Source: Podarcis erhardii
Taxonomy: Eukaryota
DNA length: 63,857 nt
Reading direction: 5' to 3' (one strand)
Assembly (NCBI GenBank): GCA_964252035.1
Contig: OZ176202.1
The notes beneath the pieces were generated by a model, which saw only the letters and a list, made by a program, of their open reading frames with translations, was not told where the DNA came from and did not search any database. Position numbers and translations under genes: made by a program. This document shows positions 40,730-41,591 of this stretch, piece by piece (the first letter of the stretch is position 1; every line of letters begins with the position of its first letter).

Positions 40730-41591
40730 GTACGATGTGATAAGGAAATTTAGTGATATTTGTCCAAGTCCATTAGAAACTTCAAATTTTATGATAAGTA
40801 TAAGGTTTTGGGGAGCAAAATATTGCTTGCAACCTCCAAGTTTTAGAATGACATTGTTTCTATTTATGAATTAAAGGGACTGCATTGATAAATATTCTAT
40901 TATATTGTTCTTCATTAATTTATGCTAGCAAATTTATTTGATGTGAATGTTTAGCATAAGCAAAATAATTCCAGTTACTGTCAACCAATGACTATGTATG
41001 CCCATAACAGCAAAATATAAGAGCATTTTAGGTATTTGCCTAATTTTGACATCAAACCAAACCTTAGCTTGATTCGAAACATAAAACAGGTAAAGTTGAG
41101 AGTTGCTTGTTTGCTCCCCCCCCCAGGTCCCCTCAATATTCATAAATTTAGTACCTTCTTTATTGTGCAGCAACTGTAAGGTAGAGTAGAGGGGGAAGTT
41201 CTGTTGCATGAGCAGAACCATAGTGTTGGCTACAACCTCGCAAATCTGTACGACTATGTGGAAAACTCTTTAAGTATACCTGGCTTCTGTCAGTAAAGCC
41301 TTAACATATTGCTACACTAACAACCATGACAATTCGTTTTTAGTTATCTCAACATTTCAGAGATAAGATTTTTAATCCATTTCTTTCTGCCAGTTGGTTT
41401 GTGAATTCCGAAATGCACCTCTACTCTCTTATTATTGTTATTCAGTACTTACATTCACACCCCACTCTTTCACAAGTACCCAGAACAGCTTACCCAAAAA
41501 ATTAAATAGAATTGTTAATATGTAAATTCAGGAACAAGAACTTTTTTAAAAGCCAAACATAGCACTAACTCCTTCTTTTAAAAAAGGATAT
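40730..41591 (-). other. U12-type (minor spliceosome) AT-AC intron, 862 nt
   Basis: 5' splice site ATATCCTTTT; branch site TTTCCTTATC ending about 10 nt upstream of a terminal AC; restores the G|AT (Asp) codon. Confidence 0.93.

Follow-up and report, generated by a model that had tools for sequence, protein, structure and literature searches.

An AT-AC intron in the CEP170 gene of Podarcis erhardii and its assignment to the U12-dependent minor class

Results

The CEP170 locus of P. erhardii

The window analysed here, a 63,857-nt stretch of the Podarcis erhardii genome (OZ176202.1), carries a CEP170 orthologue on its minus strand. With falcon CEP170 as the query, tblastn gave twelve blocks on this strand, from 46278 to 1188, and the Pfam CEP170_C domain was found in a 656-residue exon (8284..6317) downstream of the intron that is the subject of this report (E = 5e-126). 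This intron, of 862 nt, occupies 41591..40730 (minus strand), is in phase 1, and splits the codon of Asp92 after its first base. The coding exon before it (79 nt, 41670..41592, minus strand) is preceded by a canonical AG, encodes T66 to Y91 plus the first base of D92, ends ...TTTGGATATG, and is 96% identical to falcon CEP170 by tblastn. The coding exon after it (59 nt, 40729..40671, minus strand) starts ATACTAAT, completes the D92 codon with its first two bases, continues with TNLFTVVRGEMRVPEEALK, and has GTATGC directly after it. Joined together, the two exons form a single stop-free open frame of 46 residues in which RFGY-D-TNLFTVV is restored, and the spliced peptide is identical to the FHA domain of human CEP170 (PDB 4jon, residues 67-112) at 44 of 46 positions (E = 9e-25).

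Both neighbouring introns are canonical GT-AG introns, the upstream one (680 nt, 41671..42350, minus strand) placed by boundary mapping and the downstream one (1716 nt, 38955..40670, minus strand) by boundary mapping and a joint in an RNA contig. Indeed, the junction search returned GT-AG ends for all the other well-mapped CEP170 introns in the window. An earlier reading of the window, made from sequence only, had the AT-AC intron splitting the FHA domain; this stands for the crystallised domain, as 4jon residues 67-112 continue across the junction, but not for the Pfam FHA model, which stops exactly at the end of exon 41670..41592. By these alignments, the intron lies at the edge of the Pfam model, yet inside the structural FHA domain. 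Structure models of residues 1-125, made to place the intron between strands, were too poor for use (pLDDT 34 from a single sequence and 42 from an 18-sequence alignment).

Several other features of the window were recorded. The G+C content is 0.57 at 60001-62000 vs about 0.38 elsewhere, some 14 kb upstream of the exon with the ATG (46278), and this segment probably represents the CpG-island promoter of CEP170 together with a non-coding first exon. The large exon 25198-25878 (minus strand) maps uncleanly with the falcon protein at its end towards 15012; the best junctions are GC-AG at 25218 or nearby GT-AG sites, each of which leaves extra residues, and alternative splicing is likely here. Between 38799-38960 and 37470-37679 (minus strand) the intervening intron is ill-defined, with HSPs that overlap in the protein and have low similarity, and this region may hold an alternative or divergent exon. 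On the opposite strand, a 154-aa ORF at 16121-16585 (plus strand), in a patch of G+C 0.48 inside a CEP170 intron, had no Pfam match and may be what is left of a decayed transposon. Positions 1304-1468 consist of 165 N.

An intron with U12-type signals

The intron opens ATATCCTTTT and closes TTTCCTTATCACATCGTAC. Its 5' splice site, ATATCCTTT at 41591..41583, agrees with the U12 consensus RTATCCTTT at 9 of 9 positions, and its branch-site element, TTCCTTATC at 40747..40739, has one mismatch to TTCCTTRAY, being without the second A. The candidate branch A, at 40741, has 11 nt of intron after it, a distance within the U12-type constraint of about 10-15 nt, and the terminal AC is at 40731..40730. 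If the intron is retained, an in-frame TAA at 41580..41578 ends the frame (D-I-L-F-stop). The sequence-only reading had given the same coordinates, the same ends and the same one-mismatch branch site, and the letters bear it out exactly; its stop four codons into the intron is likewise true of the window, albeit not of the other loci compared below. In a search of every possible donor and acceptor near each pair of exons, the AT-AC pair 41591/40730 gave the top protein match, no GT-AG or GC-AG solution was among the top three for the Asp92 junction, and none of the canonical alternatives brings back the conserved peptide.

The window has 3 copies of RTATCCTTT, where 1.9 would be expected, and a loose pair scan (ATATCCTT, then within 5 kb a one-mismatch branch site near an AC) found 11 such combinations of donor, branch site and AC, compared with a mean of 3 and a maximum of 11 in 100 Markov simulations. 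The motifs alone are no rarer than chance, and are not counted as support for the intron. The site rises above chance because the homology block ends exactly there, the frame is restored, an RNA contig shows the exact removal, and the structure is conserved in four further loci.

A second exact copy of ATATCCTTT is present at 41826-41834 (minus strand), inside the upstream GT-AG intron, with about 160 nt between it and the exon. The equivalent 700 nt of the four other loci lack it, and it is most likely a chance occurrence. At its start (40711-40729, minus strand; 19 nt) the downstream exon reads ATACTAATCTTTTTACTGTAG, with a TACTAAT motif similar to a branch site, a run of T and an AG, and resembles there a U2-type 3' splice site lying 18 nt inside the exon, the AG being contributed by a synonymous GTA codon that is GTT in falcon; this element could act as a cryptic 3' splice site when minor splicing fails. 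An Rfam scan of 40400-42000 found no RNA family in or near the AT-AC intron.

Removal of the intron from RNA

In run X8, which is presumed to be RNA and comes from a sister species about 2% diverged, a single Logan contig (461 nt, depth 6.6) lacks exactly 862 nt (40726>41589). An ATA repeat (3 nt) flanks the junction on both sides and makes its placement ambiguous: the joint may be shifted by up to 3 nt, and of the 4 equivalent placements one is AT-AC at 41591/40730. The junction 41592>40729 anticipated from the sequence was thus recovered, in this one contig, as an exact 862-nt removal. The same contig also has the neighbouring joint 38954>40671, with CT..AC on the plus strand and hence GT..AG on the gene strand. 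Even a processed-copy origin of the contig would imply an mRNA spliced at the AT-AC junction. Raw RNA reads of a relative were sparse, with 5 reads only across 3.9 kb in X23 and X24, and none in X1.

The flanking repeat had also led to the expectation that this junction would be easily misplaced, and several deposited gene models do mis-draw it. Translation runs on into the intron in the elephant-shark CEP170Bb model and in a further CEP170B-like protein (RFGYDILL... and RFGYDILF...), the catfish CEP170B model draws it with non-consensus GT..AA ends and adds ILLH, and the Aplochiton model has a shifted junction with LH added. The affected entries, from several fishes and a chimaera (L003:2024-2208, L004:670-932; P0023, P0056, P0059, P0021 and P0043), read through the intron, shift its junction, or start inside it. 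Such disagreement among models, together with the ambiguity due to the ATA repeat, could raise the suspicion that our own intron is a mis-drawn GT-AG intron or an artefact of assembly or alignment. However, none of the 4 equivalent placements in the RNA contig is GT-AG or GC-AG, there is no GT near the end of exon 41670..41592, use of the first downstream AG instead would remove the conserved TNLFTV, and the same structure is found in four independent assemblies. We therefore regard such an error as having almost no probability.

Conservation in vertebrates

Five loci were compared, with the introns read at the same codon: the window, falcon CEP170 (L001, intron of 607 nt, branch element TTCCTTAGC), a river lamprey CEP170-like gene (L002, 1453 nt, TCCCTTAAC), CEP170B of the catfish Silurus (L003, 185 nt, TTCTTTAAC), and a CEP170-like gene of the galaxiid Aplochiton (L004, 263 nt, TTCTTTAAC). 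Like the intron of the window, the four others are all in phase 1 in the same codon, start G|ATATCCTT, and end in AC. The distance from the branch site to the intron end is 11 nt in the window and in falcon, and 11-12 nt in lamprey and the two fish loci. Mean pairwise identity among the five introns is 100% over +1..+8 and falls to 31% over +9..+40; towards the 3' end it is 61% over -11..-20, vs about 25% for the flanks, 22% over -3..-10, and 100% at the terminal AC. Such a profile is typical of U12 introns. Furthermore, RFGYD is present at the junction in all the CEP170 and CEP170B representatives across vertebrates.

Since the same intron is found in lamprey, fish and falcon, and in CEP170B, it predates both the CEP170/CEP170B duplication and the lamprey-gnathostome split. 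The intron is thus at least as old as the vertebrate ancestor, and the view that it is conserved rather than new to this lineage holds back to lamprey and in the paralogue. No invertebrate CEP170 relative was among the 72 representatives. A stop in the retained intron is present in all five loci. It comes after 16-22 codons in the other four and after 4 here, which argues that the four-codon position is local and reflects no conserved design.

Not every AT-AC intron belongs to the minor class. AT-AC introns of the major, U2-type spliceosome exist (85 major-type AT-AC introns are mentioned in the CENATAC study), and terminal dinucleotides by themselves leave the class undecided. The intron of the window could in principle be one of these rare introns, but its 5' splice site agrees with the U12 consensus at 9 of 9 positions, 8 of its bases are invariant across vertebrates, its U12-type branch element keeps a fixed spacing of 11-12 nt, and the orthologous human and mouse intron has been scored as minor (PMC6717393). 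A U2-type assignment is accordingly very improbable. The splice signals and their spacing, the RNA junction, the deep conservation and the catalogue match all agree with the U12-type AT-AC class proposed from the sequence at the outset.

Discussion

In this study, we found that the CEP170 gene of P. erhardii contains an 862-nt AT-AC intron, and we hold with great confidence that it is the orthologue of the known U12-dependent AT-AC minor intron of CEP170, a statement that we extend to its ancient origin and to the splicing mechanism proposed below. The CEP170 AT-AC intron is already known, and is catalogued in human and mouse. Consultation of the human and mouse minor-intron catalogue, a check suggested along with the sequence-only reading, turned up the CEP170 intron in the supplement of the Minor Intron DataBase paper (Olthof et al. 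2019, PMC6717393), where the minor intron of Cep170/CEP170 is listed as conserved between mouse and human. Its 5' site is given there as ATG|ATATCCTTA and its branch site as TCTTCCTTAGC, with scores of 96.7/99.7 for the 5' splice site and 84.5/80.1 for the branch site, and the same supplement has a minor intron in mouse Cep170b too (PMC6717393).

Read from its signals, the intron would be spliced by the minor spliceosome in the established way. U11 snRNP would pair with the ATATCCTT 5' splice site, where U6atac would later take over, and U12 snRNP would pair with TTCCTTATC, making the A at 40741, about 11 nt from the 3' end, the likely branch point. The cut after the terminal AC would then join G|AT and re-form the Asp92 codon, presumably between the last FHA strands. 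On retention, the translated product would stop short of the last FHA strand, with I-L-F added after residue 92. The TAA at 41580..41578 is more than about 55 nt upstream of the downstream exon junction, and many introns follow; a retention stop so far upstream of many exon junctions would be placed as the NMD position rule demands, and unspliced mRNA would be expected to yield no CEP170.

A regulatory reading of this intron is plausible for CEP170 and, by our assessment, has already been discussed for the human gene. Along the lines of the sequence-only reading, presumed slow minor splicing, the immediate stop and NMD would together deliberately gate the output of CEP170, tying centrosome and cilium function to the minor spliceosome. 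The four-codon stop has the position that NMD requires, retention would truncate the FHA domain, and the position of the intron has been kept since the vertebrate ancestor in both paralogues. However, minor-intron positions are deeply conserved in general, so that conservation is no proof of a regulatory role, and the early stop is lineage-specific, the stops elsewhere coming after 16-22 codons as in any AT-rich intron. In human data, A-type introns have higher basal retention, and the CENATAC study counts CEP170 among the mitotic regulators whose A-type (AT-AN) minor introns are significantly retained when CENATAC is depleted, but re-expression of CEP170 alone failed to rescue the phenotype. 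A prostate-cancer study places CEP170 among the minor-intron genes and records less of its protein after knock-down of U6atac, yet CEP170 was one of two such reduced proteins for which retention was not significantly raised in every cell line. A further paper refers to CEP170 as a minor-intron gene involved in ciliogenesis. Taking these points together, we consider deliberate gating rather unlikely.

It is also conceivable that the A-type intron of CEP170 and CEP170B has been selected as a rate-limiting control point, so that the production of sub-distal-appendage and microtubule-anchoring proteins would be tied to minor-spliceosome and CENATAC activity across vertebrates, and that in this lineage the stop has moved to codon 4 so that no truncated FHA fragment accumulates. 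We put this forward as a speculation with little probability of being correct. Our preferred reading is an ancient minor intron that is orthologous to the catalogued one.

As the minor intron of CEP170 is already listed for human and mouse, its value as a discovery is small. A link between minor-spliceosome disease and centrosome and cilium phenotypes is already in the literature, and CEP170 is one of many candidate targets. The practical use lies in the correct exon junction for annotating the P. erhardii genome, in the exposure of mis-drawn or read-through public models of CEP170 and CEP170B (elephant shark, catfish, galaxiid and others), and in the age of the intron, which is older than the CEP170/CEP170B split and goes back at least to the lamprey-gnathostome ancestor.

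Among known minor introns, that of human and mouse CEP170 is the closest counterpart. It is in the same gene, follows the same exon end (…ATG|ATATCCTT), and belongs to the same AT-AC (A-type) class, its position being judged orthologous from the 12-mer context, which is identical, and from the loci of falcon, lamprey and fish. Both branch sites have the TTCCTTAxC form, with TTCCTTAGC in mammals and falcon and TTCCTTATC in the window, where the G that follows the A in mammals is replaced by T. The window intron further differs in having T instead of A at base +9, in its retention stop after only 4 codons, and in its length of 862 nt, compared with 5911 nt in mouse Cep170. The minor intron of the paralogue CEP170B (mouse Cep170b and the Silurus locus) shares the same codon, the phase, ATATCCTT, the AC end and a branch site 11-12 nt from that end, whereas it is much shorter (185 nt in catfish and 416 nt in mouse) and has TTCTTTAAC as its branch site.

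The archetypal AT-AC U12 introns, such as intron F of P120/NOP2, were reportedly described by Hall & Padgett and by Tarn & Steitz in the 1990s. The window intron resembles them in its rigid ATATCCTT 5' site, its terminal AC, and its TCCTTAAC-like branch site near the 3' end, where a long polypyrimidine tract is unnecessary; it differs in that the second A of the TTAAC core is missing, while the mechanism is without evident difference. A branch core identical to that of the window, TTCCTTATC, is found in the minor intron of CNIH4 (PMC6717393). The gene is unrelated, and its intron has a 5' site of the G type (GTATCCTT); the shared core shows that this variant, with its one mismatch, is tolerated in a catalogued minor intron.
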